DNA from: Laetmonice hystrix
Taxonomy: Eukaryota
Length of the DNA stretch: 64,000 nucleotides
Assembly (NCBI GenBank): GCA_965235115.1
Contig: OZ249436.1
Location: 868,001-932,000, forward strand
Reading direction: 5' to 3'
The notes beneath the pieces were generated by a model. It was not told where the DNA came from. It saw nothing but the letters and a program-made list of their open reading frames with translations, and searched no databases. The translations under genes were made by a program, and so were the position numbers. Each line of letters begins with the position of its first letter. Within the stretch, counting starts at the first letter, position 1. This document shows, piece by piece, positions 62,542 to 63,039 of the stretch.

Positions 62542-63039
62542 AATGTTAAATTGGGCGCCGATATTGTTGTTGTTGCAGTTCGACCATGAATGTTAAATTG
62601 GGCGCCGATGTTGTTGTTGCAGTACGACCATGAATGTTAAATTCGGCGCCGATGTTGTTGTTGCAGTACGACCATGAATGTTAAATTCGGCGCCGATGTT
62701 GTTATTGCAGTACGACCATGAATGTTAAATTGGCCGCCGATGTTGTTGTTATTGCAGTACGACCATGAATGTTAAATTGGGCGCCGATGTTGTTGTTGCA
62801 GTACGACCATGCATGTTAAATTGGGCGCCGATGTTGTTGTTGTTGCAGTACGACCATGAATGTTAAATTGGGCGCCGATGTTGTTGTTGTTGCAGTACGA
62901 CCATGAATGTTAAATTGGGCGCCGATGTTGTTGTTGCAGTACGGCCATGAATATTAAATTGGCCGCCGATGTTGTTGTTGCAGTACGACCATGAATGTTA
63001 AATTGGCCGCCGATGTTGTTGTTGCAGTACGACCATGAA
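62542..63039 (+). repeat. 44/47-bp tandem array, 11 copies, containing the 3' splice site and first 12 nt of the 63028 exon
   Basis: Unit tgttaaattgggcgccgatgttgttgttgcag|tacgaccatgaa; the last copy continues into the exon. Confidence 0.95.

Follow-up and report, generated by a model that had tools for sequence, protein, structure and literature searches.

The stretch of DNA analysed here, called the window throughout, comprises 64,000 nucleotides of a Laetmonice hystrix contig (OZ249436.1, positions 868,001 to 932,000 of the forward strand). Towards its end lies an exon that encodes EF-hand sequence, is joined across a long, repeat-filled intron to a micro-exon, and is preceded by a tandem array whose units each carry a copy of the acceptor. 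The features on which the analysis turns are the following.

22159-22182, plus strand: phase-0 micro-exon of 24 nt encoding KWKNLFDK (ttgtttcag/AAATGGAAGAACCTGTTTGACAAG/gtaagc), which supplies the entering helix of an EF-hand and has a strong acceptor.
22183-63027, plus strand: intron of 40,845 nt, 69% of it made up of 25 minisatellite arrays as called by TRF.
62542-62983, plus strand: ten pseudo-acceptor modules (copies 1 to 10 of the array), in each of which a branch-like TGTTAAA and a tract rich in GTT lead up to a single AG; the exon-derived TACGACCATGAA and a TAA come next.
62984-63027, plus strand: copy 11, the probable authentic 3' splice-site module, adjoining the exon body; its AG at 63026-63027 precedes a conserved (Y/F)D.
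62996-63002, plus strand: putative branch site TGTTAAA, in which the A at 63001, at -26 from the AG, is the candidate branch point.
63028-63192, plus strand: EF-hand exon of 165 nt (YDHEGAGEITLEDF...TYQDIINI), with HMMER matches in other genomes that share its boundaries.
63037-63066, plus strand: purine-rich stretch containing GAAGGAG, GGAGAAA and GGAGGA, present after copy 11 only and presumably active as a splicing enhancer.
63193-63198, plus strand: authentic donor GTGAGT, at a position conserved across all homologous loci.
63376-64000, plus strand: downstream array of 31/45-nt units reiterating the donor, the first unit reading AACATT/GTGAGTTGT as against AACATC/GTGAGTTCT at the true junction, 63192/63193.

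Adding the micro-exon to the EF-hand exon improved the match to the Pfam profile EF-hand_6 from E = 0.13 to E = 3.2e-5, with the profile spanning the join. The score of 23.7 bits falls just under the 25-bit cut-off, and the paired profile EF-hand_7 matches at E = 1.8e-4, the fragment being too short for the curated thresholds. The loop DHEGAGEITLED fits the 12-residue EF-hand pattern (an acidic residue at position 1, Gly at 6, a hydrophobic residue at 8 and an acidic one at 12) with D1, G6, I8 and D12, and the best full-length PDB alignment of the joined peptide runs end to end along EF3-EF4 of ALG-2/PDCD6. The arrangement W-K-x-L-F-D-x-F-D ... D-P-H-K-x-E-V-L may resemble the N-terminal EF-hands of rhomboid-related proteins (RHBDL3 / Drosophila rhomboid-4), whose protease domain would be encoded by downstream exons situated beyond the window. 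Orthology to EFCAB6 was rejected, since its PDB profile matches are summed weak matches to the many EF-hands of that protein. A word-index protein search intended to name the gene returned only P0001 and no named full-length homologue; P0006 and P0010 were discarded as spurious repetitive bacterial proteins, and in the protein libraries searched, neither this species nor any close relative was represented by a protein derived from a transcript. Among the ten longest non-array open reading frames of the window, none matched Pfam and no other gene was identified, and the neighbouring called genes likewise had no Pfam matches. Nothing was found by Rfam on either strand of 60000-64000 at E up to 0.1. 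When open-reading-frame pieces of the homologous contigs were compared by tblastn with the array-masked window, only the EF-hand exon and the micro-exon were recovered, and no other conserved exon in the intron.

Homologues of the exon were sought by a HMMER scan of its 55 residues against 1.84 billion representative proteins, which retrieved the same exon as open-reading-frame fragments on other eukaryotic contigs at 93% (P0001), 70% (P0002, corresponding to locus L001), 52%, 47%, 44%, 42%, 40% and 37% identity; a further locus, L010, was added from JGI metagenomes. In L001, L002, L003/L004, L005, L006, L007/L008, L009 and L010, the exon starts after an AG with (Y/F)D and ends before a GT, and its length is 165 nt in all loci for which DNA was available except L001 (162 nt). 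These borders are kept in nine independent loci. The micro-exon, too, has a counterpart, in the TARA scaffold L002 (47% identity), where a 24-nt exon cag/AAATGGCGGCAGCTGTTCGACCAG/gtaaaa encodes KWRQLFDQ and was matched independently by tblastn. In L002, the micro-exon lies at 5157-5180 and the EF-hand exon at 7106-7270, separated by an intron of just 1.9 kb that is almost free of arrays. Because the homologous exon borders, the L002 micro-exon and the EF-hand profile across the join agree, both the border at 63027/63028 and the 40,845-nt intron beginning at 22183 are well supported.

Across this border, TRF reports a single array, 62542-63039, with a period of 44 (alternative period 91, that is, 44+47), 11.0 copies, 93% matches and a score of 818, a repetitiveness far beyond chance. 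Anchored on TGCAG, the acceptors end at 62578, 62622, 62666, 62710, 62757, 62801, 62848, 62895, 62939, 62983 and 63027, at a spacing of 44 or 47 nt. In the phase-0 frame, acceptors 1 to 10 are followed by (Y/F)(D/G)H(E/A)(C/Y) and then by TAA as the sixth codon, with codon variants after acceptors 1 (TTC), 6 (GCA) and 9 (GGC, TAT); acceptor 11 alone reads through, from YDHEGAGEITLEDF to the GTGAGT donor at 63193. The initial annotation had described eleven copies of 44/47 bp spanning a real intron/exon border, ten of them stopping at a sixth-codon TAA with variants in copies 1, 6 and 9 and only the last continuing, all reached by a phase-0 join from a micro-exon with its donor at 22182. TRF and TGCAG anchoring reproduced its acceptor positions exactly, and the sequence bears out its reading of the stops; the conserved exon start in nine loci, together with the micro-exon at 22159-22182, its L002 counterpart and the profile match across the join, puts the border and the join on the same footing.

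The array reaches 10-12 nt into the exon, an overlap consisting of TACGACCATG plus a 2-nt AA that is also the start of the unit, so that the 44-nt unit can be read in three parts: TACGACCATG(AA) from the exon, then AATGTTAAATTGG(G/C)CGCCGA, then TGTTGTTGTTGCAG. What was duplicated would be a 44-bp segment made up of the last 32 nt of the intron and the first 10-12 nt of the EF-hand exon. Since about three quarters of the unit is intron, its length is not divisible by three and all frames close within about one unit, the in-frame stops of the decoys are unremarkable. The decoy stop TAA and the putative branch point are formed by the same bases (62999-63001, where decoy 10 stops, and the equivalents in each unit), the TAA lying within the TGTTAAA of the next acceptor. 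An ATG (CCATGAATG) in each unit (62584-62990) opens a 15-codon reading frame that ends in the next unit, and the ATG of the last copy (63035) opens an out-of-frame one of 52 codons across the exon, which is rich in R and W and looks non-coding.

Each unit contains exactly one AG, and the AG-free zone before each acceptor (42-45 nt) equals the whole unit, which means that the real acceptor must have its branch site within the unit and that every copy has it. TGTTAAA is the only branch-like motif there; all copies match a relaxed YTRA with it, at -26 or -29, and it would be the branch site of the real acceptor; a TGTTAAT stands at -20 before the homologous exon of L005. The tract is weak, with 55-60% pyrimidine between -23 and -4 and a longest run of 2-3; at the micro-exon acceptor, the corresponding values are 85% and 10, and in L001 they are 90% and 16. 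Over the interval from -32 to +12, all copies are identical or near-identical. Each copy is a complete but intrinsically weak acceptor module.

The copies diverge from their consensus by 2.4-3.8%. Several variants are common to neighbouring copies (G22C in copies 3-4, a G-to-A change of the tract in copies 4-5, G24C in copies 5, 10 and 11), which points to stepwise growth of the array and argues against simple assembly stutter. That the AGs and TAAs of the decoys are intact is no sign of selection, since only about 0.5-0.7 hits would be expected at this divergence, with about 0.5 falling in the twenty decoy AG positions. The 2-nt AA that unit start and exon have in common is found at both ends of the array, a microhomology of the kind expected if the duplication arose by slippage.

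Among the homologous loci, the acceptor is single-copy in L001, L002, L005, L007, L009 and L010, and the one acceptor of L001, at 70% identity, has a classical branch site and tract. A copy of CAGTACGAC that the TRF consensus suggested for L009 was dropped, since cagtactag and cagtaggcc are what the copies themselves read. In P0001, the closest relative (93% identity), the upstream sequence was deduced from just 14 in-frame residues; these fit a tract and AG at 13 of 14 positions and the AATGTTAAATTGG motif at 11 of 13, six bases nearer the AG. Tract and AATGTT motif are present upstream of the P0001 exon, and the exon-derived 12-mer fits nowhere in its 14 upstream in-frame residues. P0001 thus appears to be single-copy, and the array appears young on that scale.

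The acceptor is not the only junction of this exon to have been repeated. Between 63381 and 63961, the downstream array holds 15 GTGAG pseudo-donors, and it runs off the end of the window. Only one gap, of 14 nt, is needed to align the true donor region with the 31-nt unit, and the local alignment scores at the top of 500 shuffles. As far as the sequence goes, both junctions of the EF-hand exon are reiterated in the window. In another lineage, that of L003 (40% identity), a 22-nt array of at least 10.7 copies with 70% matches occupies positions 1-333 (and 1-46 of L004, from a second run); it reaches 8 nt into the exon, and its units reiterate the acceptor as TGAAG/TATGATGA. Among the L003 decoys, the nearest also meets a stop, a TGA in the ninth codon. 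The coding sequence of L003 is intact beside this old, degenerate array, which shows that arrays of pseudo-acceptors are tolerated for long periods. In a third lineage, that of L006, at least seven copies of a 59-nt unit fill 541-958, from within the exon, 35 nt short of its end, as far as the contig extends, and the donor GTG/GTAGGT recurs in them at 634, 752, 810, 863 and 922; the acceptor tract of the homologous exon in this locus (381-405) is a (TG)12 microsatellite.

Junction-spanning arrays thus occur at this exon in three of nine loci, a small sample drawn from homologues of one exon only. The arrays of the window, L003 and L006 have units of different length and sequence and take in different amounts of the exon. 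Homology between the window and L003 arrays was rejected, as their periods (44 as against 22) and exon parts (12 as against 8 nt) differ and their sequences disagree outside the constrained positions. Because closer relatives lack an array and the units differ, an independent origin of all three is the simpler account, and the window and L003 arrays more likely arose independently.

The setting in which the window arrays are found is extraordinarily rich in repeats: 41 arrays with periods of about 12-95 nt cover 43,790 of the 64,000 bases (68%), and the intron would shrink to about 13.3 kb if each of its arrays were collapsed to one unit. Most arrays of the window are built from a unit unrelated to those of the others, with short stretches of unique sequence in between, and the observed/expected CpG ratio is 0.63. 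Telomere-like arrays at 25406-25657 and 47879-48098 carry TTAGGG and CCCTAA in both orientations within one unit; they are interstitial, palindromic and situated in the intron. Arrays at 10643-11203 (GGGGGTCGGGGGAG...) and 18181-18352 (GGGGGTTGGGGT) are very G-rich on the plus strand. The latter runs directly into a run of N at 18353-18484, and another N run (45477-45615) begins 17 nt past the end of an array.

To put the junction arrays into proportion, we used as a null model the chance that an ancestral position falls within a unit that is later amplified, with all arrays collapsed to one unit each. Amplified units make up 10.5% of the collapsed window and 11% of the collapsed intron. The neutral expectation is therefore about 10% per splice junction, and at least one of the four junctions of the window would be straddled about one time in three; the junctions of the micro-exon are not straddled. 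With the neutral chance this high, the acceptor array needs no special explanation beyond tolerance.

Several known systems offer themselves for comparison. Closest is the 37-bp minisatellite in intron 7 of F7, a donor-side array of 5-9 copies in which the exon-proximal site alone is normally used, while the pseudo-sites proved functional when tested (Borensztajn et al. 2006, PMC1557585). As here, the exon-adjacent unit holds the real junction and the authentic site is accompanied by identical sites, and the L006 array resembles F7 further in that it is the donor junction that is repeated. However, the authentic donor of F7 is the first to be transcribed and scanned, while in the window an acceptor is repeated, ten copies precede the authentic one, and a branch-like site and a tract come with every unit. 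The 31-bp repeat of CBS intron 13 and the minisatellite of IFI6 (6-16), for which the account in PMC1557585 gives use of the two nearest pseudo-sites besides the authentic one, also extend across the border of an exon with its intron and so offer several splice sites, but they are donor-side, human and accompanied by transcript evidence, whereas the present array is known from its DNA alone. The same account links CBS repeat length to enzyme activity, which provides a precedent for copy number as a dial on expression. Finally, the intronic minisatellites of LMNB2 and PDGF, with 10-18 units of 81-100 bp, are described there as using the authentic site alone. They, too, are junction-repeating arrays, and their authentic-only use is the outcome that we judge most likely here, although they are donor-side and have longer units.

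Like these cases, the array of the window is an intronic head-to-tail array with units of 10-100 bp, and its exon-adjacent unit contains the authentic junction, an acceptor as opposed to the donor of all the cases cited. It fits best among the junction-reiterating minisatellites of the F7/CBS/IFI6/LMNB2 type, as a variant on the acceptor side; our literature searches yielded no acceptor-side precedent for such a minisatellite. In NAGNAG acceptors, more than one AG likewise competes for one intron end, but the distance between them is 3 to about 12 nt, and they have a common branch site and tract and mostly keep the frame. Here, the spacing is 44/47 nt, each unit has one AG and its own branch-like motif, and every alternative leads to a stop. 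Recursive splice sites were rejected, as each AG is followed by TACGAC or TTCGAC and no GT is regenerated. [quoted passage not shown] Cases of regulated unproductive splicing are typically conserved across species; the alternative sites seen here are not, given that relatives have a single acceptor and that the units of L003 and L006 differ.

Which acceptor is used may be decided by what follows it. Within 60 nt downstream of copy 11 there are purine runs of at least five, and purines make up 60% of this span; after decoys 1 to 9, no run of this length occurs in the next 60 nt and the purine content is 50%, and acceptor 10 reaches only the first run, at the far end of the span. The exon that copy 11 defines is 165 nt long, and those beginning at decoys 10, 9, 8 and 1 would measure 209, 253, 297 and 614 nt; the exons of decoys 8 to 10 are thus still of normal size. 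A special RNA structure that might mask the decoys was not found in 62500-63200 (fold z = +1.17, with 17 of 20 shuffles at least as stable), and in the lack of any unusual fold, structural masking is unsupported.

Taken together, we propose that the array is a lineage-specific minisatellite that would have arisen by tandem duplication of a 44-bp segment across the acceptor. Such a duplication can be tolerated because the exon-proximal copy is always left intact and the extra copy goes into the intron, and it would be harmless for as long as the spliceosome keeps picking the proximal copy. Copy 11 may be chosen through exon definition, in which a weak 3' site would depend on exonic enhancers and the downstream donor; only copy 11 adjoins the purine-rich exon body and would yield the conserved 165-nt exon ending at 63193. 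The upstream copies would then be mostly silent pseudo-sites, with any leak greatest at copy 10 and declining from there with distance; leaked transcripts, carrying stops, would be candidates for nonsense-mediated decay. In our assessment, the decoys are probably mostly silent, with copy 11 being chosen and the array being a tolerated by-product of repeat-packed DNA. We stop at probably because an array of acceptors does not simply mirror one of donors: transcription reaches the decoys before the real site, and under the accepted model, in which the spliceosome scans 5' to 3' for the first AG past the branch site, the last copy has no advantage (see the discussion in PMC1557585). Early tandem-duplication experiments gave conflicting results. 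The normal size of the exons that decoys 8 to 10 would give, and the use of proximal pseudo-sites in IFI6 and CBS, likewise speak against wholly silent decoys.

A stop codon well upstream of an exon junction is an arrangement that commonly triggers nonsense-mediated decay, and one can ask whether the decoys capture a substantial share of the transcripts and direct them into this pathway, with a variable copy number setting the output of the gene. The initial annotation had suggested as much, describing the array as a diversion to decay and its copy number as a heritable dial. The position of the stops is indeed prone to decay, each of them standing at least 191 nt before the next junction, and the ten decoys are complete, match the real module from -32 to +12 and are transcribed ahead of it; IFI6 and CBS moreover use their two nearest pseudo-sites, and CBS repeat length is associated with enzyme activity, as reported in PMC1557585. 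The function as a decay sink did not find the same support, for none of the relatives examined shares the array, a base rate of about 10% per junction is expected under neutrality, and enhancer-like sequence lies downstream of copy 11 only, with no masking RNA structure or other special feature to be found. There is also no detectable constraint on the AG and TAA positions, although a test at this divergence has no power and their conservation is uninformative, and no copy-number polymorphism was observed in the one haplotype available. We therefore regard a substantial diversion of transcripts as unlikely. A decay sink or dial is possible but unsupported, the dial faring no better than the sink against the missing arrays of the relatives and the neutral expectation, and neither is needed to explain why the array is there.

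The recurrence of such arrays could also mean that something promotes them at this exon, or at splice junctions generally in these lineages, be it mutational seeding or selection for spare sites. Both exon junctions are reiterated in the window, and L003 and L006 add an independent acceptor array and a donor array to make three of nine loci. Yet the sample is small and made up of homologues of this exon alone, and at 3-10% per junction in repeat-rich contigs we estimate that two further arrays among eight loci are within chance; the three arrays also differ in length and sequence of the unit and in the exon they include, and the micro-exon junctions have been spared, all of which makes a favoured junction distinctly unlikely. 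For the broader proposition that the reiteration is no accident, be it through mutational seeding at junctions or through decoy arrays that tune productive mRNA with a heritable copy number, we see a slim chance, slightly better than for favoured junctions as such. Finally, tandem arrays are error-prone in assembly and four N runs of the window adjoin arrays, so that the array or its copy number might be an artefact. Its eight distinct point variants and GTT indels, however, form an ordered pattern common to neighbouring copies, forty other arrays of the window are built similarly, and independent assemblies, with L003 and L004 representing two sequencing runs, show comparable arrays at this exon. 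An artefact is accordingly very improbable, and mostly silent decoys upstream of a used copy 11 remain our preferred reading.

Donor-repeating minisatellites such as those of F7, CBS, IFI6 and LMNB2 have served as natural experiments on 5' splice-site choice. The locus described here provides the corresponding natural test for the choice of a 3' splice site among near-identical modules, with no need for an engineered construct. As the authentic site is the last of eleven to be transcribed, scanning in which the first site wins and exon definition predict different outcomes. If the decoys leak, the array would be an acceptor-side example of repeat length affecting the amount of productive mRNA. 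More generally, an intron of 40.8 kb that is 69% minisatellite, together with arrays at the same exon elsewhere, raises the question of how splicing stays accurate in introns inflated by tandem repeats.
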